DNA from: Oculina patagonica
Taxonomy: Eukaryota
Assembly (NCBI RefSeq): GCF_052425735.1
Contig: NC_135771.1
Coordinates: 10,850,001-10,914,000 of the forward strand
Reading direction: 5' to 3'
DNA: 64,000 bases
Part shown: piece by piece, positions 780-34,201 of the stretch
How the letters are laid out: each line of letters begins with the position of its first letter
Numbering within the stretch: position 1 is the first letter of the stretch
Notes under the pieces: model-generated
The model's database searches: none
The model's input: the letters and a program-made list of their open reading frames with translations, nothing else
What the model was told of the DNA's origin: nothing
Position numbers and translations under genes: made by a program

Positions 780-1058
780 TCCCATGATAGCAACTGGGGA
801 TGTAGTCAGGGTGATGAGATTGGAATCGTCCTAACAGACCATCAAAACAGCATATTGGCTCCACTTTCAGTCAACAGTGACGGATGGTACCTTCTGCCAG
901 GTTACACCTTCAACTCACCGGTCCTCGAGTTCTGTCAATCTCTCTCTTTCTCCGCTAGCGACGAGCTGCGTCTGTGGTATGGAGAGGATTTAATGGACAC
1001 TGGCGAGTACGACAACTATGGTACATCGTGCGCAGACCTGTATGATCTTACGGCTTAA
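780..1058 (+). pseudogene. 3' half of a divergent family member (type IV); 5' half absent from the window
   Basis: Reads in frame as SHDSNWGCSQGDEIGIVLTDHQNSILAPLSVNSDGWYLLPGY...LRLWYGEDLMDTGEYDNYGTSCADLYDLTA*. Sequence upstream of ~770 is unrelated and A-rich. Confidence 0.8.
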
Positions 1059-1872
1059 ATCAGCAGCCAACACTAAGCTGACCCGATGCAGCCGCAAACC
1101 TCGCACAGTACAATAAAATAGTAATTTTCAGTAGATGGGACAGTTTTGTAGTTACTTGATTGAAGGCATTAATAAAGGTACTCGAGGTGAAAAAGTTGTG
1201 TTTGTTCAGCGTCGTCTCCGAATACATTTTTTCCATTCACAAAAACTTAAGCTTGCTTCTCTATTTAAGCACTCGCATGCAGCAAAAACTCTGCAATCTG
1301 TCGTTTGGATGCGTTTCAAGGCGAACGTACAAAGTAAAGCCATTTTGAAAGAAATTGAACAGCACCTGATGCATAGAAGTACAATTCTTTGTAAATATTC
1401 CTAAAATATTGAAATTAAACTATCGATCAAATTTTGCCAGAGATGATGTAAAAATATGCAAGAATTTCTCTCAAGCGTTCGTGACAAAAATTACTCTAAC
1501 ATGCATTGATCATAGAGTTTCAATTTAAATTCCATTGGTTAGGTAAAAAAAAACATTTATTTTCCAGCTGAAAGAAAGAGGGAAAAGAATCAACAAAAAT
1601 TACTAAGAAATAAACAAAAAAAGAAAATAGAACTGTGAAAAAGTTGTAAAAATGTGTCCTAATTTTGGGCTGTGTATATGCTTGAGAATGATAGTTAACT
1701 CGCAACTGCCAGATAATCCGCATTTTTAGCAATTCAGTTTATCTTTAAATGTCTTTTGTCAGGAGTCATGGGCTCCTGCATTTTCCCAGTCAAAATTTGC
1801 TCAAATCCCAGTTCCCATTTACCCCCTTCAGGCCCCTCTTCCCTTTTCTAAACTTTTTATTTCAGTTGGACC

Positions 1873-2036
1873 CAGCCTAGTCCCTAGGCGTTCTCTCTTT
1901 TGTCCTGTAATCCGCGCGAAGTCTGGGACTGGGACGCTCAAGAGAACGCTGTTCTCGACGAGTCTTTCTCGGTGACGTCATGGCTCACAATAGGGTCCAG
2001 GGTTGACCGAGCCGAGAACGCCAAGGGACTAGGCTG
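1873..2036. mobile_element. MITE-like element with 23-bp terminal inverted repeats
   Basis: CAGCCTAGTCCCTAGGCGTTCTC ... GAGAACGCCAAGGGACTAGGCTG (1 mismatch). Paralogous copies at 21541-21704 and 35015-35178. Confidence 0.8.
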
Positions 2037-2489
2037 AGTTAATTAGACCCGGGTATCCAAACCTCTTTCACGGTTATGATTTTCCTTGTTTTAACTTGAT
2101 GAATTATTAATAAGTTTCAGAAGATTGTTTCTACAACTCCAAAGAAACACGGAGAAAATGTTCTCTAAATCTTTCAGAAAACACTGTGAGAATAAAAAGA
2201 AATCAATCGTTTATTTCGATTATCAAAATGTAAATTCTGTTTGTTCGCGCCATCATTACGTCAACATGTACACGTCGTGTTTGTCATGTCTTTCAGTCGA
2301 GTTTCAGAAGCACGGCTTTTAGTACAGAAAAACCCTTCAGTTCAGACGCATTTTTTCTACCAAGTGAATAGCCATCTCTGTTGTTTCCTATCAATCGATT
2401 TGAGGCGAAATAAAAAAAAAACTTATTCACAATAAATTAGGAGAAGGTTTTGCTTGCTGGGTATTGTTCAATTTAACGACAAACATAAC

Positions 2490-4290: not shown

Positions 4291-4395
4291 TAGAAAAGCA
4301 CAGAAAGCCACTGATCACATTCAGTTCTTCACAGAGAGCTAACCAGTAACGAAGTCTTAGACTTGAAGATCAAGAGACAAGAAACCCACATTACG
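4291..4395 (+). promoter_or_regulatory. Putative core promoter and non-coding exon 1 of the first type I gene
   Basis: Initiator-like TCAGTT at 4321-4326 and a weak TATA-like TAGAAAA ~30 nt upstream. Donor CG|GTGAGT at 4396 is conserved upstream of all nine intact genes (other donors at 7650, 11602, 16576, 19575, 36984, 40390, 43555, 46805). Confidence 0.6.
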
Positions 4396-5053: not shown

Positions 5054-5557
5054 ATGTTGTTCAAATTCCTTTTGATGTCCTTGATGGCCACCGTGCTGAT
5101 GTCCGACGAAGCTTCAGCAAATACCTGTCCTAATCAATGGGTGAAACTCAACGAGTATCCAGTTTGCTTCGGAACCCGAGATAGCCAGTTCGGTAAGTTT
5201 ACCGTCAAGACAAACATCGCCGTGAGCTCCCTGATGCTCGTGCACCGCTTAGGTGCGGTAAATTGTCAACATACCACTAAAGCCCGTGACAGCAACTGGG
5301 GATGTAATCGTACTAGCATTGGTGTCGTCCTAACAGACCATCAAAACAGCATACTGGCTCCACCTTCAATCGACAATGAAGGATGGTACCTTCTGCCAGG
5401 TTACACCTCCAACTCGCCAGTCCTCGAGTTCTGTCAATCGTTCTCTTTCTCCGCTAGCGACGAGCTGCGTCTGTGGTATGGAGAGGATTTACGTGGATCC
5501 ACCGAGAGCAACAACGCTGGTACATCGTGCGCAGACGTGTATGGTCTTGTGGCTTAA
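5054..5557 (+). CDS. Secreted Cys-rich protein, type I (167 aa, NQW variant)
   Basis: ATG at 5054 (the ORF track starts at an upstream GTG). Hydrophobic signal peptide MLFKFLLMSLMATVLMSDEASA, 6 Cys, NRT sequon, WYGEDL motif, downstream AATAAA. Confidence 0.93.
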   Translation: MLFKFLLMSLMATVLMSDEASANTCPNQWVKLNEYPVCFGTRDSQFGKFTVKTNIAVSSLMLVHRLGAVNCQHTTKARDSNWGCNRTSIGVVLTDHQNSILAPPSIDNEGWYLLPGYTSNSPVLEFCQSFSFSASDELRLWYGEDLRGSTESNNAGTSCADVYGLVA

Positions 5558-8213
5558 ACCAGCAGCCAACACTACGCTGACCCGATGCAGCGGCAAACCT
5601 CGAACAGTAAAATAAAACGGTGATTTTCAGTAGAGGGGACAGTTCTGTAGTTACTTGTTTGAAGGCATTAATAAAGGTACTCGAGGTGAAAAAAAGTTGT
5701 GTTAGTTCAGTGTCGTCTCCGAATACATTTTTCCCTTCACACAAACTTAAGCTTGCTTCTCTATTTAAGCACTCGCATGCAGCAAAACTCTGCAATCTGT
5801 CGTTTGGATGCGTTTGGAGGCGAACGTACAAAGTAAAGCCATTTTGAAAGCAATTCAACAGCACCTGATGCATAGAAGTACAATTCTTTCTAAATATTCC
5901 CAAAATATTGAAATTAAACTATCGATCAAACTTTGCCAGAGATGACGTCGAAATATGCAGGAATTTCTCTCAAGCGTTCGTGACAAAAATTACTCTAACA
6001 TGCATTGATCATAGAGTTTCAATTTAAATTCCATTGGTTAAGTATAAAAAAAACACATTTATTTTCCAGCTGAAAGAAAGAGGGTAAAGAATCAACAAAA
6101 ATTAAGAAATAAACAAAGAAAGAAAATGGAAGGTGTGTAAAAGTCGTAAAAATGTGTCCTAATTTTGGACTGTGTATATGCTTGAGAATGATAGTTAACT
6201 CGCAACTGCCAGATAGTCTGCATTTTTAGCAATTCAGTTTCTATATAAATGTCTTTTGTCAGGAGTCATGGCCTCCTGCATTTTCCCAGTCAAAATCTGC
6301 CCAAATCCCAGTTCCCGTTTACTCTTTCAGGCCCCTCTGCCCTATTCTAAACTTTTTACTTGAGGTACCCCTTAAAATTCTTGGTTTTCACGTGACGTAA
6401 TCAAAATTACAAAATCGCAAGAACCCTGAGTTTTTATCCTTCACTGGATATTAGACATTTTTTTTGATGATATATATTTTGTTGAACATTACACTGACTA
6501 CACTGTAAAGCAGTTTAAATCATAAAACGAAGATATGCTTAAAACAATAAAAGATTTGCAAAAAAAAGCGACGAAAACAAAGTTTACGTGTACCCATAGA
6601 GAGCCACATGTATTGTTAAGCGTGCACGTCTTTGGGCGACAGATACTTAGAAGTGCCAACTTCTCGAAACTTGAAACTGGCTTTAAGCAGCTGTTTTCCA
6701 ACTCATGGAAGCCGTTGAAAAGTTAGCTAATTTCTGCTTTGACTAAAATGTCGTCATCCGATCCACTTTACAGTCTGACTGTGAAAAGACCACGCGGGGG
6801 ATCAATATTTGTCTTGAATCACAATAGCTGGCTAATAGAAAACCCGACCCGACGGTCACGTTTTGTACTCTTTAAACTCAAATGTCACTGAACAAATCCA
6901 TTGTGATTTTTTTCTCAAAACTTGCACGGCATTAAGCAGCTGTTTTCCAACTCATAGAAGCCGTTGAACAGTTAGCTAACTTCTGCTTTGACTGAAATGT
7001 CGTCATCCGATCCACTTTACAGTCTGACTGTGAAAAGACGACGCAGCCTGAGGGATCAATATTTGTCTTGAATCACAATAGCTGGCTAATAAAACCCCAC
7101 CCGATGGACACGTTTTGTACTCTTTAAATTCAAATGCTAACAAAGGCATTTTGATCTTTAACAAATACCTTCCTACGTAACAAAAAACAAATCTGTTTCG
7201 TCATCCCTTTTCGTAGCCTCTGTCGTCTTTTGTTTTAAATTGGCATAAAGTTGAGCGTTATTTTGGTATTCAGCATTAGCCCTATACGAGTTCTAAAACG
7301 GAAGACTCATTTTTAGTATTACACTCTCTCTGACTGTTTTTACTTTTGTTGAAGTTCACGGCACAACGTACAAGTGGAAGTTTGCTCTGTTTTAGCTAGG
7401 CGAAAATTTACATTAACGTTAATGTTTAGAAGCCACGTCACCCAAGATGAATGCAACGTGGCATGCTCTGTCTGCAGGTTCTTCTGACATTTTTCCAACT
7501 TGATAGATGTCAATTTGATATCTTAGCGTTTCTAATTACAACCTTAGTAAAGCACAAAAAGCCACCGATCACATTCAGTTCTTCACAGAGAGCTAACCAG
7601 TAACGAAGTCTTAGACTTGAAGATCAAGAAACAAGAAACCCACATTACGGTGAGTCATTTTTGAAGCTACTTTGCATTTTTAACAGCAGAGTAATAAAGT
7701 AGCTCGCTTTTTCGTGAATAATGCGAAGCGAATACATGAGCCGGGAAAGTACTAAAATCCGTCCGTTTTTCTGGTAAAAATTTCTACTGAATTTCTATTT
7801 TTGTTTCGCAATTTTATTCCTTCAAGACGGTCCATATAAACGACATAGAAATCCTTATAGAGACTGTTATTGAAGATCGTAAATTCCTCAGGCTAGCTTT
7901 CAGGCTTCATAAATCATAAATCATTACTGTAGTCAAGATGCGCAATTTTGTGTACTCCTTTGCGTGCAGTCTCTTACTCCTCGTTTTTACAATTCGTTTT
8001 TTGTTTAACTTGTTTCATCTTGATATCACAGCCTGTGTATTTAACAACCGCTTGTTGGACTGAAAAAAGGAAAGGACAGGGAACGCCTTCTGTAAGCTAG
8101 ATACATAATGCGAGAAAAGATGAAATATTCGTATAAAAAAGGCCCTCTATTAATGTTCGAATATTCAATTGCCAAACATCAGCAGGACAAAGTTCGTCAC
8201 GATTTCTGGGCAC

Positions 8214-8323
8214 TATTCTGTCGAGGAACTATCGGCTGATAGTTGCCCCGCGGAAAACTGATGTTCTTAAAACAAATATTAGCCCGAGAAGCGAAGCTTC
8301 GAGGCCTATTATGCTAGTTTTAA

Positions 8324-8355
<32 letters not shown>

Positions 8356-8608
8356 CCGATAGTTCCAAGTCAGAAACACTCTATCGTTTTTATTGTTCAC
8401 CTGACTAAATTTTCTTCCGCGCGCCCATTCAAAAACGAGCATTTGAAATATTTTTTACTTTTCAGGATAAAAAACTCAATTGTAAACCGAAATTTAACAA
8501 TCGAAACAAAACCAGACAAGAAACCCACTAAATGCAGTGAATTTGGTTGGGTTTTTTGGTCTGCAGGCACGCTTTTTTACCAAACATTTCACGGGCGGGC
8601 ATATAACG

Positions 8609-8642
<34 letters not shown>

Positions 8643-8908
8643 TTTTATTAAAAACGCCCAAAGAATTGCAATATTTAAACTCTTCAGCTGTTTTCGTTGA
8701 CGCGTTTCGGTTACCATACTTGTGGTCAATGGTATATGAGTTCATATATTATTGCCTGTTAACCAATCAAAACGCAGGAATTGCAATATACCATTGCAAG
8801 TTTTTAATAAGGGCTGATAGCGCCCTTTGCAGATGAACATTATCGCGTCACGTGATCAATTAAAACCAATCAGAATCGGAAAAAATTTGGTGGTGTGCTA
8901 CAATACAT
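8214..8908. mobile_element. ~695-bp insertion in the intron of the type II gene (unclassified repeat)
   Basis: Interrupts ..GGCAC|AATAGCGGAGCTCCC, which is contiguous at ~33590. Absent from all other introns. Confidence 0.7.
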
Positions 8909-9009
8909 AATAGCGGAGCTCCCATTCAACGCGCGCGAGAGGAGCCCCATGACATCATGTCTTATAGTTCTGTAAATTTTCTTCCGTCTCAGATCAAAAC
9001 CAAGTGATC

Positions 9010-9525
9010 ATGTTGTTCAAGTTCCTTTTCATCTCCATGATGGCCACCGTGCTATTGTTCGAAGAAGCTTCGGCTGACTGGGTTTCTCAATGGGTGAAGC
9101 TTAACCAGGATCCAGTTTGCTTTGGAGCCAAAGATAACCGGTACGGTAGCTTTAGAGTCAGTACAAACATCGCCGTGAGCTCCTTGATGCTCGTGCACCG
9201 GTTAGGTGCTGCGATAAGGTGTGATGCTTCACCATCCCATGATAGCAGGTGGGGATGCGGTGATGACAGAATTAATGTCCACCTAACAGACCATAACAAC
9301 ATGCAACTGGTTCCAGCAACTTCAGTCCCGAAGGACGAGTACACATATTTTTACACTATGCAAGGTTACACCTCCAACTCACCGGTCCTCGTCTTCTGTC
9401 AATCTCTCTCTTTCTCCGCTAGCGACGAGCTGCGTCTGTGGTATGGAGAGGATTTAATTGACAATGGCGAGTACGACAACTATGGTACATCGTGCGCAGA
9501 CGTGTATGGTCTTAAAAAATACTAA
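9010..9525 (+). CDS. Secreted Cys-rich protein, divergent type II (171 aa)
   Basis: Intact ORF with signal peptide and the same framework motifs; 5 Cys, different loops, C-terminus KKY. Acceptor AG at 8991-8992. Confidence 0.93.
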   Translation: MLFKFLFISMMATVLLFEEASADWVSQWVKLNQDPVCFGAKDNRYGSFRVSTNIAVSSLMLVHRLGAAIRCDASPSHDSRWGCGDDRINVHLTDHNNMQLVPATSVPKDEYTYFYTMQGYTSNSPVLVFCQSLSFSASDELRLWYGEDLIDNGEYDNYGTSCADVYGLKKY

Positions 9526-12254
9526 GCTGATCCGATGCAGCCGCAAACCTCGAAAAGTAAAATAAAATGGTGATTTTCAGTAGAGGGGACAGTTTTGTAG
9601 TTACTTGATTGAAGGCATTAATAAAAGTACTCGAGGTGAAAAAAGTTGTGTTAGTTCAGTGTCGTCTCAGAGTACATTTTTCCCTTCACACAAACTTAAG
9701 CTTGCTTCTCTATTTAAGCACTCGCATGCAGCGAAAGCTCCGCAATCTGTCGTTTGGATGCGTTTGAAGGCGAACGTACAAAGTAAAGCCATTTTGAAAG
9801 CAATTGAACAGCTCCTGATGCATAGAAGTACAATTCTTTGGAAATATGCCTAAATATTGAAATTAAACTATCGATCAAATTTTGCCAGAGATGATGTAGA
9901 AATATGCAGGAATTTCTCTCAAGCGTTCGTGACGAACAATTACTCTAACACGCATTGATCATACAGTTTCAATTTAAATTCCATTGGTTAGGTATAAAAA
10001 AACACATTTATTTTCCAGCTGAAAGAAAGAGGGAAAAGAATCAACAAAAATTACTAAGAAATAAACAAAAAAAGAAAATAGAAGAAGTGAAAAAGTCGTA
10101 AAAATGTGTCCTAATTTTGGGCTGTGTATATGCTTGAGAATGACAGTTAACTCGCAACTGCCAGATAGTCCGCATTTTTAGCAATTCAGTTTCTATATAA
10201 ATGTCTTTTGTCAGGAGTCATGGCCTCCTGCATTTTCCCAGTCAAAATCTGCCCAAATCCCAGTTCCCGTTTACTCTTTCAGGCCCCTCTGCCCTATTCT
10301 AAACTTTTTACTTGAGGTACCCCTTAAAATTCTTGGATTTCACGTGACGTAATCAAAATTACAAAATCGCAAGAACTTTGAGTTTTTATCCTTCACTGGA
10401 TATTAGACATTTTTTTTGATGATATATATTTTGTTGAACATTACACTAACTACACTGTAACGCAGTTTCAATCATAAAACGAAGATATGCTTAAAAAAAT
10501 AAAAGATTTGCAAAAAAAACGCGACGAAAACAAAGTTTACGTGTACCCATAGAGAGCCACATGTATTGTTAAGCGTGCACGTCTTTGGGCGACAGATACT
10601 TAGAAGTGCCAACTTCTCGAAACTTGAAACTGGCTTTTAGCAGCTGTTTTCCAACTCATAGAAGCCGTTGAAAAGTTAGCTAATTTCTGCTTTGACTAAA
10701 ATGTCGTCATCCGATCCACTTTACAGTCTGACTGTGAAAAGACCACGCGGGGGATCAATATTTGTCTTGAATCACAATAGCTGGCTAATAGAAAACCCGA
10801 CCCGACGGTCACGTTTTGTACTCTTTAAACTCAAATGTCACTGAAAAAATCCATTGTGATTTTTTCTCAAAACTTGCACGGCATTAAGCAGCTGTTTTCC
10901 AACTCATAGAAGCCGTTGAACAGTTAGCTAACTTCTGCTTTGACGGAAATGTCGATCGTAACCGTATCCACTTTACAGTCTGACTGTGAAAAGACCACGC
11001 AGCCTGAGGGATCAATATTTGTCTTGAATCACAATAGCTGGCTAATAAAACCCCACCCGATGAACACGTTCTGTACTCTTAAACTCAAATGCTAACAAAG
11101 GCATTCTGATCTTTAACAAACACCTTCCTACGTAACAAAAAACAAATCTGTTCCGTCATCCCTTTTCGCAGCCTCTGTCGTCTTCTGTTTTAAAATTGGC
11201 ATAGAATTGAGCGTTATTTTGGTATTCAGCATTAGCCCTATACGAGTTCTAAAACGGAAGACTCATTGTTAGTATTACACTCTCTCTGACTGTTTTTACT
11301 TTTGTTGAAGTTCACGGCACAACAAGTGAAAGTTTGCCCTGTTTTAACTAGGCGAAAATTCACATTAACGTTAATGTTTAGAAGCCACGTCACCCAAGAT
11401 GAATGCAACGGGATATGCTCTGTCTGCAGGTTCTTCTGACATTTTTCCAACTTGATAGATGTCAATTTGATATCTTAGCGTTTCTAATTACAACCTTAGT
11501 AAAGCACAAAAAGCCACCGATCACATTCAGTTCTTCACAGAGAGCTAACCAGTAACGAAGTCTTAGACTTGAAGATCAAGAAACAAGAAACCCACATTAC
11601 GGTGAGTCATTTTTGAAGCTACTTTGCATTTTTAACAGCAGAGTAACAAAGTAGCTCGCTTTTTCGTGGATTATGCGAAGCGAATACACGAGCCGGGTAA
11701 GTAATGAAAGCCGTCCGTTTTTCTGGCAAAAATTCCTACTGATTTTCTATTTTTGTTTCGCAATTTAATTCCTTCAAGACGGTCCATATAAACGACATAG
11801 AAATCCTTATAGAGACTCTTATTGAAGATCGTAAATTCCACAGGCGTCAAACATCATAAATCATTACCGTAGTCAAGATGCGCAATTTCGTGTACTCCTT
11901 TGCGTGCGTCTCTTACTCCTCGTTCTGGGATACAATTCGTTTTTTTTAACTTGTTTCATCTTGATATCACAGCCTGTGTATTTAACAACCGCTTGTTGGA
12001 CTGAAAAAAGGAAAGGACAGGGAACGGTGTAAAACTTTGACGCCTTCTGTAAGCTAGATACATAATGCGAGAAAAAAGAAAGAAATATTCGTATAAACAA
12101 GCCCTTCTACTAATGTTCGACTATTCAATTGCTAAACATCAGAAGGACAAAGTTCGTCGCGATTTCTGAGGCGCAATAGCGAAGAGGAGCCCCATAACAT
12201 CATGTCTTATAATCTTCTCATTTTTCTTCTGTCTCAGATCAAAACGAAGTGATC

Positions 12255-12758
12255 ATGTTGTTCAAATTCCTTTTGATGTCCTTGATGGCCACCGTGCTGA
12301 TGTCCGACGAAGCTTCAGCAAATACCTGTCCTAAACACTGGGTGAAACTCAACGAGTATCCAGTTTGCTTCGGAACCCGAGATAGCCAGTTCGGTAAGTT
12401 TACCGTCAAGACAAACATCGCCGTGAGCTCCCTGATGCTCGTGCACCGCTTAGGTGCGGTAAATTGTCAACATACCACTAAAGCCCGTGACAGCAACTGG
12501 GGATGTAATCGTACTAGCATTGGTGCCGTCCTAACAGACCATCAAAACAGCATACTGGCTCCACCTTCAATCGACAATGAAGGATGGTACCTTCTGCCAG
12601 GTTACACCTCCAACTCGCCAGTCCTCGAGTTCTGTCAATCGTTCTCTTTCTCCGCTAGCGACGAGCTGCGTCTGTGGTATGGAGAGGATTTACGTGGATC
12701 CACCGAGAGCAACAACGCTGGTACATCGTGCGCAGACGTGTATGGTCTTGTGGCTTAA
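12255..12758 (+). CDS. Secreted Cys-rich protein, type I
   Basis: Near-identical to 5054-5557. Confidence 0.93.
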   Translation: MLFKFLLMSLMATVLMSDEASANTCPKHWVKLNEYPVCFGTRDSQFGKFTVKTNIAVSSLMLVHRLGAVNCQHTTKARDSNWGCNRTSIGAVLTDHQNSILAPPSIDNEGWYLLPGYTSNSPVLEFCQSFSFSASDELRLWYGEDLRGSTESNNAGTSCADVYGLVA

Positions 12759-14223: not shown

Positions 14224-14487
14224 AACTGGGGATGTAATCGTACTAGCATTGGTGCCGTCCTAACAGACCATCAAAACAGCATACTGGCTCCACCTTCAAT
14301 CGACAATGAAGGATGGTACCTTCTGCCAGGTTACACCTCCAACTCGCCAGTCCTCGAGTTCTGTCAATCGTTCTCTTTCTCCGCTAGCGACGAGCTGCGT
14401 CTGTGGTATGGAGAGGATTTACGTGGATCCACCGAGAGCAACAACGCTGGCACATCGTGCGCAGACGTGTATGGTCTTGTGGCTTAA
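14224..14487 (+). pseudogene. 5'-deleted type I copy
   Basis: The upstream sub-repeat (AAAACCCCACCCGA) is fused to CAACTGGGGATGT (NWGC). About 1.4 kb is missing, covering the promoter, exon 1, intron and signal peptide. Confidence 0.9.
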
Positions 14488-21540: not shown

Positions 21541-21704
21541 CAGCCTAGTCCCTAGGCGTTCTCTCTTTTTTCCTGTAATCCGCGCGAAGTCTGGGACTAG
21601 AACGCACGAGAGAACGCCGTTCTCGACGAGTCTCTCTCGGTGACGTCATGGCTCACAATAGGGTCCAGGGTTGACCGAGCCGAGAACGCCAAGGGACTAG
21701 GCTG
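21541..21704. mobile_element. MITE-like element (paralog of 1873-2036)
   Basis: Same terminal inverted repeats. Confidence 0.8.
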
Positions 21705-24200
21705 AGTTAATTAGACCCGGGTATCCAAACCTCCTTCACGGTTATGATTTTTCTTGTTTTAACTTGATGAATTATTAATAAGTTTCAGAAGATTGTTTCT
21801 ACAACTCCATAGAAACACGGAGAAAATGTTCTCTAAATCTTTCAGAAAACACTGTGAGAACAAAAATAAATCAATCGTTTATTTTGATTATCAAAATGTA
21901 AATTCTGTTTGTTCGCGCCATCATTTATACGTCAACATGCACACGTGGTGTTTGTCCTGTCTTTCAGTCGAGTTACAGAAGCACGGCTTTTAGTACACTG
22001 AACAGCCCTTCAGTTGAGACGAATTTTTTCTACCAAGTGAATAGCCATCTCTGTTGTTTCCTATCAATCGATTTGTGGCGAAATTTAAAAAAACACTTAT
22101 TCACAATTAATTAGGAGAAGGTTTTGCTTGCTGGGTATTGTGCAATTTAACGACAAACATAACTATTCAAGCAGACTGCCTGCTAAGGACTTCCTATGTA
22201 AACTTGCAAGATTGTGATGTCAAGAACATGGAGGGAGCGGAGGCGAAACCCACACGACAATTCGAGACAAGTCGTCCTGAAGAAATTGCCTAAACTTGCC
22301 AGGTAGGCTTTTGTATTAATTTAGATTTCACCAAATTCGCGAGCCCAAAGCCGTATTAATCACATTTAAGTAAAATACCAGGTGAAAGAAAATACTTTAA
22401 TGTTGACTTCATCTTTATTACGCCATTTTAGGCCAAATAGTGCGGCCCTCAAAATGGCATATCTTGCAAATTTTTGTAATTTACCTTGTATGTATTGAAC
22501 GCCCATCGCGAAAATATAACTTTCCCAAAAAATATTTTATAACATTTAGAAACTACAATAACCGTTTTAATTCTGCTCAGTTCTAATTTGGTTTCAACAA
22601 ACTGAGCACTTTGCGAGAAATTGCGAAATTGGTTGTGCTTGATTTTCCCACTTGTCAAAATGGCCGACAGACACTATGATAAAGCGACAGTTTTTTCCTT
22701 GTACATAAATCGCAAAATAATTTTACGGTAATTTTTATAAACTAGAAGAATGACTCTACTTTGTGCTGGGATTTCGTTTGATTTGGTTTACACATATTAG
22801 AGAACTAGACTCGTATATTTTTATATTTTGAGAGTGATTTCTTAGCTCAAAACATAAACCTGAGGCGTGCGTGACCAACTGCGGTTGCCATGGCAACAAT
22901 AGATCTATCAATCAAAATATGCTTGTTTTTGTTCATCCCCCAAGGTAACCTACCTACACACCAAAAATGAAGGGGTGTTTCAATAATTTATTTCCAAGTT
23001 TGATTCACTTTCTCAAAGAAGTGTTCTTAATAGCTCATTTGACGACTGTCAGCTGTCAGTAATTTCGTGCTCATTCCGCGTTGCTCCTAATTTTCAGTTT
23101 CTAATATCCTCTTTTCTCACTCAAATATTTCGTACCTTCACGTTTTTTCTTCTTTGTAACTTAAGACTTACAGTAAAGCATCGTGAACAAAAATTTATCT
23201 GAATATAACTTCGATACGGAGCACGTGCTAACTGGTCAAAAACCTAATATGTAACTACGCTCGACTTCGCGTAAGGACGAAGAATTGCTTAGCATTAGTT
23301 TAATGTTTTATTTTGCCCTATCAGTTGATGAAAACAGAAGATATGGTTCTCATAAACGTTCGAAATGCAAACTAAATAAGGTCATTACAACGAATTTTCC
23401 CGCCCGCCGTAGTTAATTAAAATAGAGCAAAGGACCTCGAGGGGAAAAAACGAAAACAAACACAAGAAACAGTTTTCGCTTTCACTGGCCTGGCATGATA
23501 TTGATAGCGTTGATATGTTCTCATTCAACATTCTACTACTCGAAAACCTTATTTGTAAGGAGAAAAACTACTACAAACAGGACGCGATAAAAGCTGAGAA
23601 GAAACTTTATAGACTCTATATAAACGCCGAGTCCTCGCACGCCGACTTGAATTCTGTACATGTTAAGTCTGTTATTCGGCAAATAACCGACGAAGAAATA
23701 CAGGCATTAAGTTAATAAATTCGGAATAAATTTCGAAAGCAGAATTTCTAGAATAAACCTCTATTCCAAATTTCGCCAGTCTTTGAAATTTGTAAACTTG
23801 CAAACTTTCCGTGCAGTCCATATTTACTCTCGTGATGAATGACTCCGGCCGATTTCGTGAACGTACTTTTAAATCATTGAACAAATTTTCTGCCTTTAAC
23901 CGATTGCCATTTTCATTTGCTTTCATTTGCTTTCAAATTTTCAATTTCGTATATTCTGTTTTCTCACTAAAAGACCTTTATAGCTTATTACCTTTTAAAA
24001 ATGTTCGTCGTGTTGATCAGTAAAATTCTAAGCGTGGAGCTGAACCTGTGTCTTATTTTTTCAGCCACTTTTATTGGCTGACCGAGTCATTCGATGAGTG
24101 TGTTGAGAATAAGCAAGTAGTTGATCTTGAAATTTAAACAAGATTTCTTTATAAAAGCAATAGACTGCACTGTCCTCACAGTGGAGTTTTATTGGCATAA

Positions 24201-24466
24201 GGGGGAGCAGGGATAGCGCAGTGGTGAGAACGCTCACTTCCCACCAATGTGGCCCGGGTTCGATTCCCGGACATGGTGTTATATGTGGGTTGAGTTTGTT
24301 GTTGGTTCTCGTCCTTGCTCCGAGGGTTTTTCTCCTGGATGTCCGGTTTTCCTCCCTCCACAAAAACCAACACTTCTAAATTCCAATTCGATCGGGAATC
24401 CGAGGGCCACAGGTTTGTCAGTTGCAAAACTGTTACGAGCAACCCTCGTTAAACAAAGTCGATTTA
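24201..24466 (+). mobile_element. tRNA-derived SINE (V-domain-like body)
   Basis: A box TAGCGCAGTGG, B box GGTTCGATTCC, body GGGTTTTTCTCC..CCGGTTTTCCTCCC, (ATTT)n tail. Confidence 0.85.
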
Positions 24467-25264
24467 CAGTTGACTCCCGATAACTCGAACCTTCAAGGGA
24501 AATTGAAAATGGTTCGAGTTATCGGGAGTTCGAGTTATCGTGAATTGAAAATAAATTACCGGAAATAAGGGCAAAAAAAGGTGTTTACTGATTTAAATGG
24601 ATTTTCTATTCATAGAACAGTGTAGATCAGTGTACATTTTAAATAAACAAATTTAATTGGAGAATAGATAAGCCGAAAGAGAAAGGAACAACATATTTCC
24701 AAATCACTGTCAGGTATACATCAGAACGTAACGTAAAACAGCAAATTTAATAGCTGCGAACTTTGCAGGTTTCAAAGAGAACAACGCTAATGCTATAGGC
24801 TACTGATTCATAGTTTATGCGACTTACTTTTCGAGAAATAGTCAGTTAATTCGCGCTGGCGATAACCCTTTAAAGTTTTCTAAGGTCGGATTTGGAAGAA
24901 TCGGTATCAACCTCCACACCCGGGCTTCCACAAACGAACTGAACGTCTGTAGCACGTCAAAAGCGGGACACAGTTCGTGTTTTGAGGGGCGTTCTAACTA
25001 GCGTAAGTTTTTATTTCAAATAATTTCAACGTTTTGGACTACAGCACACTGTTTGTTTTGACTTGTCATGTATTGACCGACATGGTTCGAGTTATTGAGG
25101 TAAAATTATATAGAAAATGACCTGAAGGGAAACGAAAGTTGGTTCGAGTTAGCGGGAGATTCGAGTTACCGAGGTAAAATTACAGTAAATGTAGAACGGA
25201 AATCCAGGAAAATAGATTTTGGTTCGAGTTAGCGCGAGGTTCGAGTTAGCGAAGGAGTCGACTG
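24467..25264. mobile_element. Non-autonomous Tc1/mariner-pogo-like DNA transposon
   Basis: TA|CAGTTGACTCC ... GGAGTCGACTG|TA; repeated subterminal TTCGAGTTA motifs; no ORF. Confidence 0.8.
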
Positions 25265-25267
25265 TAT

Positions 25268-25322
<55 letters not shown>
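25265..25322 (+). repeat. (ATTT)n microsatellite, the displaced SINE tail
   Basis: About 14 units here versus ~3 in units 2 and 3. Confidence 0.95.
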
Positions 25323-25323
<1 letters not shown>

Positions 25324-27035
25324 TAAAACCACTTGGGATGTTGGGAAAACACTCTTAAAGCATGCAAATCACTCGCATAACGGCTAGTCATTTATAAGCT
25401 TTTCTTCTCTTCTCCTAGTCCAGTCCCTGAATTCTCTTCCATCTTCCCGCGTGGTTTAATTACGCCAGTAAACCCGTTAGAAAGTGCAGTCTATGGCTTA
25501 AAGTAAAGTAAGAAAACTCTCCGCTTGGCATGTAAGTTTTCTAGGCACTTCTTTTCTAGCGCTAGTAAGCTCTGCTCAGTGATAGAAAAACGCCACAAGG
25601 CATGCGCTGTTTCTTGGCAACGATCTGGCGCTAGCAAGTTCTGCTCAGTAATTTTCTATTTTCTCATTAAAATATTTCATTCCGTCACGTTTTTATACTC
25701 TTTGTAACTTAAGACTTATCTAAAGCATCGATCTTACAATCAAAATATGCTTGTTTTTGTTCATCCCCCAAGGTAACCTACCTACACACCAAAAATGAAG
25801 GGGTGTTTCAATAATTTATTTCCAAGTTTGATTCACTTTCTCAAAGAAGTGTTCTTAATAGCTCATTTGACGACTGTCAGCTGTCAGTGATTTCGTGCTC
25901 ATTCCGCGTTGCTCCTAATTTTCAATTTCTAATATCCTCTTTTCTCACTCAAATATTTCGTACCTTCACGTTTTTTCTTCTTTGTAACTTAAGACTTACA
26001 GTAAAGCATCGTGAACAAAAACATATTTATCTGAATATAACTTCGATACGGAGCGCGTGCTGACTGGTCAAAAACCTAATATGTAACTACGCTCGACTTC
26101 GCGTAAGGACGAAGAATTGCTTAGCATTAGTTTAATGTTTTATTTTGCCCTATCAGTTGATGAAAACAGAAGATATGGTTCTCATAAACGATCGAAATGC
26201 AAACTAAATAAGGTCATTACAACGAATTTTCCCGCCCGCCGTTAATTAAAATAGAACAAAGGACCTTGAGGGGAAAAAACGAAAACAAACACAAGAAACA
26301 GTTTTCGCTTTCACTGGCCTGGCATGATATTGATAGCGTTGATATGTTCTCATTCAACATTCTACTACTCGAAAACCTTATTTGTAAGGAGAAAAACTAC
26401 TACAAACAGGACGCGATAAAAGCTTAATAGAAACTTTATAGACTCTATATAAACGCCGAGTCCAGTCGCACGCACTTGAATTCTGTACATGTTAAGTCTG
26501 TTATTCGGCAAATAACCGACGAAGAAATACAGGCATTAAGTTAATAAATTCGGAATAAATTTCGAAAGCAGAATTTCTAGAATAAACCTCTATTCCAAAT
26601 TTCGCCAGTCTTTGAAATTTGTAAACTTGCAAACTTTCCGTGCAGTCCATATTTACTCTCGTGATATATGACTCCAGCCGATTTTTTCGTGAAACGTACT
26701 TTTAAATCATTGAACCGCAAATTTTCTGCTTTTAACCAATTGCCATTTTCGTTTGCTTTCATTTGCTTTCACATTTTCAATTTCGTATATTCTGTTTTCT
26801 CACTAAAAGACCTTTATAGCTTATTACTTTTTAAAAATTTTCGTCGTGTTGATCAGTAAAATTCTAAGCGGGAGCTGAACCTGTGTCTTATTCTTTCAGC
26901 CACTTTTATTGGCTGACCGAGTCATTCGATGAGTGTGTTGAGAATAAGCAAGTAGTTGATCTTGAAATTTAAACAAAATTTCTTTATAAAAGAAATAGAC
27001 TGCACTTTCCTCACAGTGGAGTTTTATTGGCATAA

Positions 27036-27205
27036 GGGGGAGCAGGGATAGCGCAGTGGTGAGAACGCTCACTTCCCACCAATGTGGCCCGGGTTCGATT
27101 CCCGGACATGGTGTTATATGTGGGTTGAGTTTGTTGTTGGTTCTCGTCCTTGCTCCGAAGGTTTTTCTCCTGGATCTCCGGTTTTCCTCCCTCCACAAAA
27201 ACCAA
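27036..27205 (+). mobile_element. 3'-truncated SINE copy
   Basis: Matches 24201 onward, then breaks into unrelated sequence at 27206-28126. Confidence 0.8.
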
Positions 27206-28126
27206 TCAAGTTTACATCGCCGTTACATCGTTCGTCACAGTGATTTTACAGTCGTTAAAGTACCATATTCCAGTGTTTGTTTTGTCGTCATCCACGTTCG
27301 GTTACTGAAACACCACTTGTTAGCTAGGCAATCTTCCGTAAGCGGCAATCTATCCCCTTCGCCTCTTGTGGTTTACAATAATCATTCTCGTAAGCGGCAA
27401 GCTTTAGTTACGGACAGTTTTTTCGCTTCCCGAGGGTGTCCGCTTACGAGAGCTTCGACTGTATGAAGAAGCAAGCTCTACAGAAGCCAGCAAATCTAAA
27501 TATTTGTAACCAGCCTTCCACATCACTTTTAATGCCATTTTTAGCTGCCGATTTCATATTATTTCATTAAACATTAGGACAACTACAAGCAAAGGTAGCC
27601 CTTGATCAATGGGACGCTTTAATTTTACACGTGTACATGGGAATATTACAATTTGCTTCGCAGGTTATGTTTTGCTGTTTGATAAAATCACTTGATTAAA
27701 AAATTTTCACTGGCTTTGTCGGCTACGGACATTTTTTAACATCCTATGGGTGTCCGCAAACGTGAGCTTGGACTTAAACCAATATCTGTTTAAATTATTA
27801 TTATTTTGTTTATTTATTTATTTTCCTGCTCTTTCTCCGAGAAATTAGCTTTGTCATGTAGTTTCTTCTTGTAGCTAATCTTGAAATCCGAGGTTTAAAT
27901 AAAGGTGATGTTTGTATGTATTTGTATCTGTAGTGACCGAATATTCAGTCTGATTTCCATCATGAACAGAATCTTCACATTTTCTCAAAAGAATTTCTTT
28001 AAACAACCAATTTATTGTTTTTAGTTAGTATTCAGTTTCGTCAAACAAAGAATATTGATCACCAGTTTCATTTCGTGACTTGTAATGAGCAAACAATTGG
28101 CGCACGCTATTTGAGAATCATTTCCA

Positions 28127-28695
28127 TGCGAACTTTGCAGGTTTCAAAGAGAATAACGCTAATGCTATAGGCTACTGATTCATAGTTTATGCGACTTACT
28201 TTTCGAGAAATAGTCAGTTAATTCGCGCTGGCGATAACCCTTTTCAGTTTTCTAAGGTCGGATTTGGAAGAATCGGTATCAACCTCCACACCCGGGCCTC
28301 CACAAACGAACTGAACGTCTGTAGCACGTCAAAAGCGGGACACAGTTCGTGTTTTGAGGGGCGTTCTAACTAGTGTAAGTTTTTATTTCAAATAATTTCA
28401 ACGTTTTGGACTACAGCACACTGTTTGTTTTCCTCAAGAGTCCTCATGGGCTCGATGAGGATGAGTGAGTGAGTGATACTGTTTGTTTTGACTTGTCATG
28501 TATTGACCGACATGGTTCGAGTTATTGAGGGTAAAATTATATAGAAAATGACCTGAAGGGAAACGAAAGTTGGTTCGAGTTAGCGGGAGATTCGAGTTAC
28601 CGAGGTAAAATTACAGTAAATGTAGAACGGAAATCCAGGAAAATAGATTTTGGTTCGAGTTAGCGCGAGATTCGAGTTAGCGAAGGAGTCGACTG
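28127..28695. mobile_element. Right part of the TA-TSD transposon (unit 2)
   Basis: Homology resumes at TGCGAACTTTGCAGG and ends GAGTCGACTG|TA. Confidence 0.75.
28432..28477 (+). mobile_element. 46-bp 5'-truncated retroposon (LINE 3' end) with 12-bp TSD
   Basis: ACTGTTTGTTTT duplicated at 28420-28431 and 28478-28489; (GAGT)n tail; absent in units 1 and 3. Confidence 0.75.
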
Positions 28696-30433
28696 TATTT
28701 ATTTATTTAATAAAACCACTTGGGATGTTGGGAAAACACTCTTAAAACATGCAAATCACTCGCATAACGGCTAGTCATTTATAAGCTTTTCTTCTCTTCT
28801 CCTAGTCCAGTCCCTGAATTCTCTTCCATCTTCCCGCGTGGTTTAATTACGCCAGTAAACCCTTAGAAAGTGCAGTCTATTGCTTAAAGTAATAATATTT
28901 AGGCTTTTTAATATAGAAACTCTCTGCTTGGCATGTGAGTTTTCTAGGCATTTCTTTTCTAGCGCTAGTAAGCTCTGTTCAGTGATAGAAAAACGCCACA
29001 AGGCATGCGCTGTTTCTTGGCAACGATCTGGCGCTAGCAAGTTCTGCTCAGTAATTTTCTATTTTCTCATTAAAATATTTCATTCCGTCACGTTTTTTAT
29101 TCTTTGTAACTTAAGACTTATCTAAAGCATCGATCTATCAATCAAAATATGCTTGTTTTTGTTCATACCCCAAGGTAACCTACCTACACACCAAAAATGA
29201 ATGGGTGTTTCAATAATTTATTTCCAAGTTTGATTCACTTTCTCAAAGAAGTGTTCTTGAATATCTCATTTGACGACTGTCAGCTGTCAGTAATTTCGTG
29301 CTCATTCCGCGTTGCTCCTAATTTTCAATTTTTAATATCCTCTTTCCTTACTAAAATATTTCGTACCTTCACGTTTTTTTCTTCTTTGTAACTTAAGACT
29401 TACAGTAAAGCATCGTGAACAAAAATTTATCTGAATATAACTTAGATACGGAGCGCGTGCTGACTGGTCAAAAACCTAATATGTAACTACGCTCGACTTC
29501 GCGTAAGGACGAAGAATTGCTTAGCATTAGTTTAATGTTTTATTTTGCCCTATCAGTTGATGAAAACAGAAGATATGGTTCTCATAAACGATCGAAATGC
29601 AAACTAAATAAGGTCACTACAACGAATTTTCCCGCCCGCCGTAGTTAATTAAAATAGAGCAAAGGACCTCGAGGGGAAAAAACGAAAACAAACACAAGAA
29701 ACAGTTTTCGCTTTCACTGGCCTGGCATGATATTGATAGCGTTGATATGTTCTCATTCAACATTCTACTACTCGAACACCTTATTTGTAAGGAGAAAAAC
29801 TACTACAAACAGGACGCGATAAAAGCTTAATAGAAACTTTATAGACTCTATATAAACGCCGAGTCCTCGCACGCACTTGAATTCTGTACATGTTAAGTCT
29901 GTTATTCGGCAAATAACCCACGAAGAAATACAGGCATTATGTTTATAAATTCGGAATAAATTTCGAAAGCAGAATTTCTAGAATAAACCTCTATTCCAAA
30001 TTTCGCCAGTCTTTGAAATTTGTAAACTTGCAAACTTTCCGTGCAGTCCATATTTACTCTCGTGATGTATGACTCCGGCCGATTTCGTGAACGTACTTTT
30101 AAATCATTGAACAAATTTTCTGCTTTTAATCGATTGCCATTTTCCTTTGCTTTCATTTGCTTTCAAATTTTCAATTTTGTATATTCTGTTTTCTCACTAA
30201 AAGACCTTTATAGCTTATTACCTTTTAAAACTTTTCGTCGTGTTGATCAGTAAAATACTAAGCGTGGAGCTCAGAACCTGTGTCTTATTCTTTCAGCCAC
30301 TTTTATTGGCTGACCGAGTCATTCGATGAGTGTGTTGAGAATAAGCAAGTAGTTGATCTTGAAATTTAAACAAGATTTCTTTATAAAAACCAATAGACTG
30401 CACTGTCCACTCAGTGGAGTTTTATTGGCGTAA

Positions 30434-30699
30434 GGGGGAGCAGGGATAGCGCAGTGGTGAGAACGCTCGCTTCCCACCAATGTGACCCGGGTTCGATTCC
30501 CGGACATGGTGTTATATGTGGGTTGAGTTTGTTGTTGGTTCTCGTCCTTGCTCCGAGGGTTTTTCTCCTGGATGTCCGGTTTTCCTCCCTCCACAAAAAC
30601 CAACACTTCTAAATTCCAATTCGATCGGGAATCCGAGGGCCACAGGTTTGTCAGTTGCAAAACTGTTACGAGCAACCCTCGTTAAACAAAGTCGATTTA
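30434..30699 (+). mobile_element. tRNA-derived SINE (unit 3)
   Basis: Paralog of 24201-24466. Confidence 0.85.
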
Positions 30700-31700
30700 C
30701 AGTTGACTCCCGATAACTCGAACCTTCAAGGGAAATTGAAAATGGTTCGAGTTATCGGGAATTGAAAATAAATTACCAGAAATAAGGGGGAAAAGGGTGT
30801 TTACTGATTTAAATGGATTTTCTATTCATAGAACAGTGTAGATCAGTGTGCATTTTAAATAAACAAATTTAATTGGTAAATAGATAAGCCGAAAGAGAAA
30901 GGAACAACATATTTCCAAATCACTGTCAGGTATACATCAGAACGTAACGTAAAACAGCAAATTTAATAGCTGCGAACTTTGCAGGTTTCAAAGAGAACAA
31001 CGCTAATGCTATAGGCTACTGATTCATAGATTATGCGACTGACTTTTCGAGAAATAGTCAGTTAATTCGCGCTGGCGATAACCCTTTAAAGTTTTCTAAG
31101 GTCGGATTTGGAAGAATCGATATCAACCTCCACACCCGGGCCTCCACAAACGAACTGAACGTCTATAGCACGTCAAAAGCGGGGCACAGTTCGTGTTTTG
31201 AGGGGCGTTCTAACTAGTGTAAGTTTTTATTTCAAATAATTTCAACGTTTTGGACTACAGCACGCTGTTTGTTTTGACTTGTCATGTATTGACCGACATG
31301 GTTGGAGTTATTGAGGGTAAAATTATATAGAAAATGACCTGAAGGGAAACGAAAGTTGGTTCGAGTTAGCGGGAGATTCGAGTTACAGAGGTAAAATTAC
31401 AGTACATGTAGAACGGAAATCCAGGAAAATAGATTTTGGTTCGAGTTAGCCTGCGAACAGGCTCCCGAGTGGGGTTTTTACGCGAGCGAAGCGAGCGGAA
31501 GAGCGGGGTTTTACGCGAGCGAAGCGAGCGGAAGAGCGGGGCCTGAGCGGCGCCCCCGTACTTCCCCTCAGGCCCCGCTCTTCCGCTCACTTCGCTCGCG
31601 TACGCCGCTCGCTTCGCTCGTGTAAAAACCCCACTCGGGAGCCTGTTCGCAGGCTAGGTTCGAGTTAGCGCGAGGTTCGAGTTAGCGAAGGACTCGACTG
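30700..31700. mobile_element. TA-TSD DNA transposon (unit 3) with nested MITE
   Basis: TA|CAGTTGACTCC ... GACTCGACTG|TA. Confidence 0.8.
31447..31656. mobile_element. GC-rich fold-back MITE with 9-bp TSD (Mutator-like)
   Basis: ~50-bp TIR starting TAGCCTGCGAACAGGCTCCCGAGTGGGGTTTTTAC; TSD GGTTCGAGT at 31438-31446 and 31657-31665; empty sites in units 1 and 2. Confidence 0.9.
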
Positions 31701-33691
31701 TATTTATTTATTTAATAAAACCATTTGGCATGTTGGGAAAACACTCTTAAAGCATGCAAATCACTCGCATAACGGCTAGTCATTTATAAGCTTTTCTTCT
31801 CTTCTCCTAGTCCAGTCCCTGAATTCTCTTCCATCTTCCCGCGTGGTTTAATTACGCCAGTAAACTCTTAGAAAGAGCAGTCTATTGCTTAAAGTAATAA
31901 TGTTTAGGCTTTTTAATGTAGAAAACTCTCCGCTTGGCATGTGAGTTTTCTAGGCATTTCTGCTCAGTGATAGAAAAACGCCACAAGGCATGCGCTGTTT
32001 CTTGGCAACGATCTGGCGCAAGCAACTTCTGCTCAGTGATCGCACGTACCTTAATAACTCATTTGACGACTGTCAACTGTCAGTAATTTTCTTTTTTCTC
32101 ATTAAAATATTTCATTCCGTCACGTTTTTTATTCTTTGTAACTTAAGACTGATCTAAAGCATCGTGAACTATAATTTATCTGACAAGAAATAGTTTTTAG
32201 GCTTTTTAAATGTAGAAAAATCTACCTTCCCTGGAAAAACGCCGCTTAAAATATGGTGTTTCTAGGCAACAATCTGGCGCCAGAAAGCTCTGCTCAATGA
32301 TTGAGTTTACCTAAATGGCTCATTTGTCAACTGTTAACTGTCAGCTGTCATTTTTGTTTTTCTAACTGGCTTATTAGGACCCCTTAAAAGAGAGAACGTC
32401 TAAGATCGTATCCCATTCTCAACAGAGAACCAACTATTAACGGATATCTGACTTGTCGCAGAAGAGGTTCATAAGTGAAGAAAAAGTGCAGTGCAGTAAG
32501 TAACGTCTTTTATCATGTTTATAAGATTCTCTCCTCCGCAGAGGCCTCTCTTTTTTTCGTACGGGCTGGGAAAAGGGGCAATGGGGAGAGGTGAAAATAA
32601 GCGCACGGGGCCTGGGGATATAACGGCTGCCTGATGTAGTACCTCTCGAAGTATAAACCAATGCCAAACACGAGGAAGTGGACGCATTCTTCACAACAAA
32701 TTTTTACAAAAGTATAAAATACCAAAAATACCGAGTCGATAATAGCTTTTGTATCACAATACCTGAAATGTTTGTTGAAAGCCTTAGTTCTTTGTATTCT
32801 TTTTAGAAAGTGGATAATGCTTTGATAAGGGAGAAACAGGGAAGTTACCTACCCTTTGGCCGTTTTTCTATGATTTTCTAAGTATGAATGTTTACTCGTT
32901 TTTCACACGTACGTGGATAAAAACAGAAAGTTTTATCACAGGTATCGGAAAAAAAAAATGCGTTGGCTCAAGTGTCGATAGTTAAGGGTTACAATTGTTA
33001 CTGTTGATAGTTAATTAATGTGTTTAAAAAGAGAAAGTGAAGTTTCTGACGGTGCTTTTGCCGCAGATCATCCATCGTTAAGGTCTAAAGCAAGAGCATT
33101 GATAAAATATTTGTTCAATAAATAACAAGTTTTAATCCCGCTTTTTGATCCCAATTTCTTTTAAACTGGTACCAGTTCTCGAAGGATTTCTTGTTTTCGT
33201 GGGGAAGGTTGCGGATTGACACATTTTGCATAGGAAACTCAAGGTGTTACGTTGCTATGAATTGCAACCTCCCCATGAAAAAACTCAGTAAATATTCATA
33301 CATGTACCACCAATTTTTTTTTTATTTTGATTTTTGAGTCCAGCTGATGGGTTGTAATTTCAATTTTCAAATTTACACTTACCGCTTTTTAAAACATTAT
33401 ATAACGAAACATGCTACAAATGGTTTTACAATGTTATCAAAATACTTAAACTATAAGCTATAAAAATACAAAACGAATAATGCGAGAACAAGAAAGAAAT
33501 ATTCTTATATACAAGGCCTTCTACTAATGTTCGACTATTCAATTGTCAAACATCAGCAGGACAAAGTTCCTCGTCACGATTTCTGAGGCACAATAGCGGA
33601 GCTCCCGTTCGGCGCGGCGAGAGGAGCCCCATAACATCATGTCTTATAGTCTTCTCATTTTTCTTCTGTCTCAGATCAAAACGAAGTGATT

Positions 33692-34201
33692 ATGTTGTTC
33701 AAGTTCCTTCTCATTTCCTTGATGGCCACCGTGCTGTTGTTCGACGAAGCTTCAGCAAATACCTGTCCTAAACACTGGGTGAAGCTCAACGATGATCCAG
33801 TTTGCTTTGAAGCCAAAGGTAACCAATACGGTTCCTTTACCATCAGTAGCAGGATCACCGTGAGCTCCTTGATGCTGGTGCACCGCTCTGGGTGGGTAAG
33901 ATGTTCTTTTGTTTTATCCGCTCAAAGCAACTGAGGATGCGGTGATGGCAGAATTAGTGTCCACCTAACAGACCATAAAAACGGGCGACTGGTTCCAGCA
34001 GCTTCAGTCCCGATAGACAGTTACGGGTATTACCATATGCCAGGTTACACCTCCAACTCGCCAGTCCTCGAGTTCTGTGAATCTCTCTCTTTCTCCGCTA
34101 GCGACGAGCTGCGTCTGTGGTATGGAGAGGATTTAACTAACAAAACCGAGTTCGACAACGCTGGTACATCGTGCACAGACGTGTATGGTCTTGTGGCTTA
34201 A
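33692..34201 (+). pseudogene. Divergent type III copy with a single in-frame TGA
   Basis: TGG>TGA at 33932-33934 (W of SNWGC). The frame continues intact as GCGDGRISVHLTDH...WYGEDLTNKTEFDNAGTSCTDVYGLVA*. Upstream homology stops at ~33477, so exon 1 is missing. Confidence 0.88.

Follow-up and report, generated by a model that had tools for sequence, protein, structure and literature searches.

A 64-kb stretch of chromosome C14 of the coral Oculina patagonica (C14:10850001–10914000; hereafter the window, in whose positions coordinates are given below) carries a head-to-tail array of genes that are predicted to encode small secreted lectins of the AJLec type, and its divergent copies raise the question of whether parts of the encoded protein have been shuffled between genes by reciprocal exchange. 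Self-comparison delimits the array from 770 to approximately 48870 in units of 3–3.4 kb, each with one uninterrupted reading frame, in a single coding exon, for a secreted protein of approximately 167 aa. Eight intact type I genes and one intact type II gene are accompanied by three dead copies, namely type III, type IV and a fragment of type I. In a first-pass annotation made from the sequence alone, types III and IV were taken for segmental mosaics of types I and II and for the near-reciprocal products of one exchange. Our analyses show that recombination among tandem copies, through gene conversion or unequal crossover, has indeed shaped these genes; the evidence points to type IV as a true recombinant, and to type III as an old lineage in which shared ancestral states imitate recombination.

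Placement of types III and IV across a breakpoint

The features on which the argument depends are as follows; the copy positions and residue motifs quoted for types III and IV in the first-pass annotation are all present.

770–1058, + strand: type IV, a 5′-truncated pseudogene that forms the array's left edge, read here as a true recombinant
815–898, + strand: type I-lineage tract in type IV, over loop C (the counterpart of the Tyr97/Phe103 loop in AJLec); 29 of 30 sites differing between I and II match I
917–1050, + strand: type II-like 3′ part of type IV (conserved block and loop D), judged by sites differing between I and II, with two exceptions at 928–929
1059–2489, + strand: B-type 3′ flank and 'tailB' following type IV, homologous to the flank after type III
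33692–34201 (from the ATG), + strand: type III, full length with one in-frame TGA at 33932–33934, read as an early-branching member of the II/V/VI clade
33877–33925, + strand: loop B region of type III, grouping with paralog VI; coordinates interpolated from the column map
34037–34060, + strand: type III equivalent of the main breakpoint (894–917 in type IV), from dynamic programming and site patterns

Two paralogs outside the window were included in the comparison, type V from 4 kb beyond its right end and type VI from chromosome C7 (C7:30574617–30575120), and seven paralogs from a cluster on chromosome C12, with 50–55% protein identity to type II, served as outgroups. The conflict is plainest in the quartet of types I, IV, III and II, where 17 consecutive informative sites (alignment columns 273–382) support I+IV|II+III and seven of the eight sites that follow (columns 405–547) favour I+III|II+IV. 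A maximum chi-square (MaxChi) permutation on this quartet gave p=1e-4, and the pairwise homoplasy index (PHI) gave p=0.0002–0.0004 for several taxon sets. We then located the change with a parsimony dynamic programming approach resembling the genetic algorithm for recombination detection (GARD) and covering all 945 rooted topologies. The best single breakpoint lies at columns 382/385 (894–897 in type IV, 34037–34040 in type III) and saves 10 steps, which none of 200 permutations equalled (p<0.005); the change in site patterns falls within columns 382–405 (894–917 in type IV, 34037–34060 in type III), at the start of a conserved block. A single tree is inadequate for all segments, and the first-pass annotation is supported in placing a breakpoint within the conserved block and in proposing recombination among tandem copies.

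Maximum likelihood (ML) trees were estimated for segments A (columns 1–183), B (184–270), C (271–390) and D2 (391 to the end). Segment A gave (I,(III,(VI,(II,V)))), with a bootstrap of 80 for type III with the II clade; segment C separated (I,IV) from (III,(VI,(II,V))) with a bootstrap of 99; and segment D2 gave (I,(III,(IV,II,V,VI))) with bootstraps of 91 and 99. Type III is therefore sister to the II clade in all three (bootstraps 80, 99 and 91 respectively), and, once types V and VI and the outgroups are added, type IV is the only copy to change place across the breakpoint. Near-reciprocal products are thus not supported, for IV alone changes partner, and the view that both copies are mosaics of I and II stands for type IV, given the conflict between segments C and D2, and is not confirmed for type III, which keeps one position in A, C and D2.

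Type IV is the leftmost unit, with no other array unit within 20 kb upstream. Its homology, as detected by blastn, begins at 770, the frame is closed upstream by a TAG at 774–776 and approximately the first 82 codons are missing. This copy may have been without function from the outset. At sites that distinguish types I and II it is II-like from 780 to 788 (three sites) and mixed from 793 to 814 (six I-like, four II-like), ahead of the I-like tract over loop C. Placement of type IV inside the II/V/VI clade is rejected for segment C (difference in log-likelihood (lnL) 34; approximately unbiased (AU) test, p=1e-5; 16 to 17 additional parsimony steps with four outgroups), and its placement with type I is rejected for segment D2 (lnL difference 19.6, AU p=0.008; 7 to 11 additional steps with four outgroups), consistent with 95% identity between 895–1050 of type IV and 9359–9514 of type II over 156 bp. 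The simplest reading of these patterns is that type IV is a II-clade copy bearing a type I-lineage tract of approximately 85–130 bp over loop C. This tract differs from present type I at 16 of 99 positions, retains an ancestral 'VN', and found no closer donor in a search of the genome; hence the event would be old, preceding the recent amplification of type I. In its 3′ flank and 'tailB' type IV resembles types III and V, at a distance of 1.9–6% (1.9–4.2% between the III and IV flanks), and 1800–2489 is 97.4% identical to 34942–35623.

Type III was inactivated by a TGA that replaces the family-invariant Trp of 'NWGC'. Its grouping with type I is rejected in segment C (AU p=1e-4) and is never the ML optimum in A or D2; when A and D2, the parts described previously as type I-like, are concatenated, I+III is worse by 7.5 lnL (resampling of estimated log-likelihoods (RELL) 0.03, AU p=0.07). 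Across the whole gene, 31 of 35 informative sites support I,III|II,V. The outgroups on chromosome C12 carry the ANTCP mature N-terminus, a short form of loop C with '...ILAP...GWY.L.GY', 'ES(D/N)N(A/G)G' and a 'GL(L/V)A' C-terminal end, and for this reason the apparent type I features of type III (ANTCP, NAG, GLVA) are best regarded as ancestral. Loop D of type III is intermediate, the derived positions that link it to the II clade outnumbering those that link it to type I, and the region upstream of the gene is of type I style. Judged on these comparisons, type III is better read as a stable, early-branching lineage, sister to II+V+VI, than as a hybrid of I and II. Loop B departs from this position, since III+VI has a bootstrap of 96 in columns 184–270 and the alternative is rejected (AU p=0.008), as against 100% for VI with II/V in segment A; types III and VI have ten exclusive sites in common within columns 204–258. 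An exact look-up of an 80-aa piece from the 5′ part of type III returned nothing on record, and a genome search produced no closer donors for this copy.

Exchanges elsewhere in the array and the family

The remaining members and interruptions of the array are listed here.

5054–5557, + strand: type I gene, intact, 167 aa; open frame with a match to PDB 6a56
12255–12758, 17229–17732, 20229–20732, 37635–38138, 41045–41548, 44208–44711 and 47461–47964, + strand: seven more type I genes
9010–9525, + strand: type II gene, intact, 171 aa; a mosaic in which the 5′ third is close to paralog V and the 3′ flank is type I-like
14223–14487, + strand: 3′ fragment of type I, a pseudogene in which an internal deletion fuses unit position 347 to 1784
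21534–33476, no strand assigned: interruption by unrelated tandem repeats of approximately 2.9 kb, with the two sub-arrays on either side, from self-comparison

Mosaicism appears, from sequence comparison, to be general in this family and not special to types III and IV. Types II and V differ at only three of 162 sites in columns 1–183, the 5′ third of the gene, and by 9–20% in later segments, while the distal 3′ flank of type II is only 0.9–1.2% from that of type I units. Parts of the B-type flank accompany the final type I gene of each sub-array (20229 and 47461). Pairwise identity among the eight type I genes is 98.8–100%, and pairs of their four informative sites display all four gametes. 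The cluster on chromosome C12 gives a PHI p=2e-4 on its own. For types I, II, V and VI, whose genes are intact, the segment trees largely agree, and both copies described as mosaics are dead, which argues against the functional combinatorial diversification proposed at first. Nor do broken copies seem to have served as conversion donors: type I genes have no coding state in common exclusively with types III or IV, types II and IV have four scattered sites in common, and the only candidate is the old block of loop B similarity between types VI and III.

Coding sequences are 76–85% identical between types (synonymous divergence (dS) 0.15–0.27) and adjacent 3′ flanks are 91–96% identical (for example, 9010–10864 against 41045–43000), so that the diverged loops resemble islands in otherwise homogenised repeat units. 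Variation is also clustered between alleles of type VI. The copy on chromosome C7 and that on contig JADOBR010005427.1 of assembly GCA_044670265.1 have 10 mismatches and one indel over 3504 bp, and five of these mismatches, each of them nonsynonymous, fall within 72 bp of coding sequence (nt 215–286, covering loop B and the beginning of the strand after it; scan-statistic p=2e-4). A genome search found no donor for either allelic state.

Several other features of the locus were observed. The 5′ truncations of the type I fragment and of type IV are independent and start no more than 21 bp apart in gene coordinates, just before 'NWGC'. The 12-kb interruption comprises about three copies of the 2.9-kb repeat (22899–25233 and 29129–31450, for example, are 96.6% identical), with no Rfam match in the block and no Pfam match among its stray open reading frames (ORFs). 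Types II and V have a common 730-bp insert, at 8208–8938 in type II and approximately 70 bp upstream of the start codon region, that is absent from types I and III; its 129-aa ORF has no Pfam match, and the promoter-proximal region of types II and V may thus differ from that of other types. The GenBank model KAL9951002.1 joins the first 42 codons of type III (33692–33819) to the next type I gene (approximately 37610 onward), giving a protein with two signal peptides, and the join is probably a prediction artefact. A GT follows 'GCCAAAG' at approximately 33819, and a pyrimidine-rich stretch ending in CAG lies approximately 20 nt upstream of the ATG of every gene, signals that hint at an intron in the 5′ untranslated region.

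A predicted lectin fold with variable binding loops

AJLec is a Ca2+-dependent, galactose-specific lectin of Anthopleura japonica, a sea anemone (PDB 6A56; PMC6070535). In phmmer searches against PDB, type I (E=5.2e-23) and type II (E=1e-25) both matched 6a56_A over residues ~29–169, the full mature chain. An AlphaFold2 model (predicted local distance difference test (pLDDT) 87.8) had 6a56_A as its top Foldseek match (E=1.2e-11; template modelling (TM) scores 0.75/0.77; root mean square deviation 2.2 Å), the next match reaching only E=2e-3. A Pfam scan of types I and II matched no family model. On homology and modelling together, the array genes are predicted to encode AJLec-type lectins with a small jelly-roll beta-sandwich fold.

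The four intrachain cysteines of AJLec (Cys15–Cys156 and Cys48–Cys61) align with the array proteins; in a comparison of 62 family members, C38 and C159 showed no variation and C71 and C84 almost none. At the positions of the Ca2+ ligands Glu141, Asp150 and Asn151, Glu (within 'YGED') and Asn are kept, and Asp150 corresponds to Asp in types II–VI and to Asn in type I. The galactose contacts Arg64, Phe67, Tyr97, Phe103 and Met147 fall in hypervariable patches and are not conserved, differing between types, and galactose specificity cannot therefore be assumed. Family membership is unaffected by these differences, since other AJLec homologues are likewise reported to lack conserved galactose contacts (PMC6070535). 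The array proteins hence agree with AJLec in full-length homology, fold, intrachain cysteines, 'YGED', the Glu and Asn ligands, secretion and a length of ~165 aa; they differ in that the N-terminal Cys of the AJLec dimer disulfide is missing from types II, V and VI, in the Asn of type I at the Asp150 position, in the variability of the sugar contacts, and in that their lectin activity is predicted from sequence.

A further difference is one of number. Where Nematostella has seven AJLec homologues and Stylophora 29 by published count (PMC6070535), the O. patagonica genome has at least 150 loci of this family in several tandem clusters (for example, C6:31.27–31.59 Mb, C11:10.2–10.97 Mb, C10:23.11–23.17 Mb and C12:3.22–3.30 Mb), a few of them with in-frame stops. 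Outside O. patagonica, a protein search returned no relative with more than 60% identity, and a scan of metagenomes with a 39-nt pattern from the conserved block gave no hits.

Entropy across the family peaks at type I residues 72–79, 85–91, 104–112 and 147–151, and the predicted model has loops, or the short helix 3, at these residues. These patches align to the Cys48–Cys61 loop with Arg64/Phe67, the Tyr97/Phe103 loop and Met147–Asn151, elements that bind Ca2+ and galactose in AJLec, such that the term 'loop' used in the first-pass annotation is structurally apt and the types probably differ in glycan specificity. The ratio of nonsynonymous to synonymous substitution rates (dN/dS) is ~1.1 for the whole gene and nominally 1.3–3.1 in the patches; positive selection is suggestive only, because no dN/dS comparison is significant.

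Explanations for the mosaic copies

We consider ordinary germline gene conversion in a lineage-specific lectin array, with type IV a recombinant and type III an old intermediate lineage, to be the most probable explanation, and would assign it a probability of roughly 0.6. Under this explanation, recent tandem amplification would have produced the eight type I genes with their ~99% identity, while three loops at the sugar site diverge fast. Occasional ectopic gene conversion or unequal crossing-over would then involve tracts that begin and end in the conserved framework and flanks, to which they would be limited because strand exchange requires high identity; given that requirement, tracts would stop at diverged loops and leave breakpoints in the conserved block. 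Type IV would be a dead, 5′-truncated edge copy of the II clade with an old type I-lineage tract in loop C. Type III, inactivated recently, would have gained the derived loop C, kept its N-terminus and part of loop D in their ancestral form, and exchanged loop B with the VI lineage. If loops C and D are scored as ancestral or derived, the combinations are ancestral-ancestral in type I, derived-ancestral in type III, derived-derived in types II, V and VI and ancestral-derived in type IV, and therefore one exchange suffices. The pseudogenes fit the part of unprotected recipients and relics of exchange, and not that of a reservoir of donors or a generator of combinations.

Concerted evolution and ectopic gene conversion are familiar from other tandem multigene families, such as the MHC, KIR and plant NLR clusters. 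Like the array, these have paralogs that are mosaic, breakpoints placed in conserved sequence, recognition segments that have diverged beside homogenised flanks, and pseudogenes in which tracts accumulate; we see no essential difference, the family and the organism being new and the process known. Genes for snake-venom phospholipase A2 (PLA2) isozymes and for conotoxins combine accelerated coding evolution with conserved non-coding DNA, and the array likewise has coding regions (dN/dS ~1) more diverged than their 3′ flanks; it differs in that homogenisation of the flanks by conversion is an equally good cause, and in that it is not known to have a role in venom.

Several results weigh against the explanation by conversion with one recombinant copy. 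The quartet conflict is symmetric, and from segments C and D2 alone type III could equally be the recombinant and type IV the stable copy; type IV was chosen because of the flanks, the upstream structure and its 95% match to type II. The I-like tract of type IV is 16% off type I with no closer donor found in the genome. The flanks of types III and IV are 2–4% apart and their loops 21–35%, which calls for additional events or homogenisation of flanks. Comparison of patches with framework in intact genes yields no pair in which a loop dN/dS above 1 reaches significance. Finally, I+III is not formally rejected in segment A or D2 (AU p=0.11 each), and a triplet test with type III as the child of types I and VI gives p=2e-4.

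The last two results, together with a triplet p=0.002 for parents I and II, also favour the strongest competitor, in which type III is a true mosaic as well, through separate, non-reciprocal conversions from the type I lineage at its 5′ end (the upstream region and N-terminus), its 3′ end or both. Types I and III have in common an extra codon in 'CPKHW' (outgroups have 'CPRW'), the upstream sequence from -190 to -88 and a derived Glu in 'VLEF'. The N-terminal run could, however, result from a single complex replacement on the stem of II/V/VI; ML and parsimony favour I+III by no more than one step, and with only two of four outgroups; and in A (17–20%) and D the distance of type III from type I matches its distance from the outgroups. 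We therefore regard a mosaic type III as possible but unlikely.

A more dynamic role for the loops, as exchangeable cassettes that recurrent short-tract conversion (with dead copies as reservoirs) and loop-focused mutation would assemble into new combinations within populations or colonies, we consider improbable. If true, it would give corals a diversified glycan-recognition repertoire, of which the allelic cluster in loop B of type VI would be a trace.

About as improbable is the origin of types III and IV as near-reciprocal products of a single exchange between type I and a type II-like gene within the conserved block, as first proposed. Mirror-image site patterns across one breakpoint suggest it, as do the four parent-to-product distances, which come to 0.42–0.58 when scaled to the I–II distance of the segment, and the sister 3′ flanks of types III and IV with their common downstream tail. 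It is disfavoured by type III, which does not group with type I in segment A or D2 (7.5 lnL; bootstraps 80 and 91), has I-like residues that are ancestral, and is closer to the II clade in the derived positions of loop D. Moreover, when direct repeats undergo one exchange, the two products come to lie on separate chromatids; types III and IV stand 33 kb apart in the same orientation.

Programmed or somatic diversification within individuals, with pseudogenes as donors in the manner of chicken immunoglobulin genes or of SpTransformer, is very improbable, and the assembled sequence gave no evidence of such shuffling. Dead copies do adjoin intact genes, the differences between alleles gather in a binding loop and there are at least 150 loci; against this, no tract in an intact type I gene can be traced to types III or IV, the exchanges inferred are all old (5–18% from the nearest donor), and gene flanks have no microsatellites or other targeting repeats. 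The SpTransformer (Sp185/333) genes of sea urchins are clustered immune-type genes with block mosaics, presence or absence of elements and flanking microsatellites, and the likeness drawn by the first-pass annotation is confined to clustering and to variants that look like mosaics of common blocks. The coral copies are collinear, with indels of one to three codons only and no mosaic of element presence and absence; they have a single coding exon and belong to an unrelated protein family; and Tandem Repeats Finder (score 50) detected no microsatellite at unit borders in window positions 1–49000.

Convergence without recombination, in which parallel substitution under selection at the binding site and retained ancestral states would account for the patterns, is scarcely credible. 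The unusual selective regimes of the loops (dN/dS ~1–3) and the five clustered nonsynonymous changes in type VI alleles, which lack a genomic donor, lend it some plausibility; it requires 17 or 7 coordinated homoplasies in contiguous blocks that include synonymous sites and common indels, and leaves aside the 95% identity of types IV and II over 156 bp and the flank swaps in non-coding DNA. Arrays of 99%-identical units are difficult to assemble, yet chimeric copies from mis-joined reads can be dismissed, because a chimera would be ~100% identical to its parents and the parts of type IV are 84% and 95%, and those of type III 79–83%, identical to their nearest relatives.

The mechanism favoured here, germline gene conversion in a tandem family, is ordinary; what the locus offers is a recombinant copy, type IV, and exchange boundaries that can be pinpointed, together with a worked example of how common ancestral states can mimic a reciprocal recombinant. 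Tachylectin-2 of Oculina is a putative recognition lectin with high nonsynonymous diversity among alleles at one locus (PMC2880987). It comes from the same coral genus and differs in fold and family, and in that its diversity is carried by single-locus alleles where the array is a tandem mosaic. Corals lack adaptive immunity, and symbionts are told apart from pathogens by surface glycans. An array in which divergence is concentrated in predicted sugar-binding loops is hence a candidate recognition repertoire for O. patagonica, a coral used as a model of bleaching and disease.

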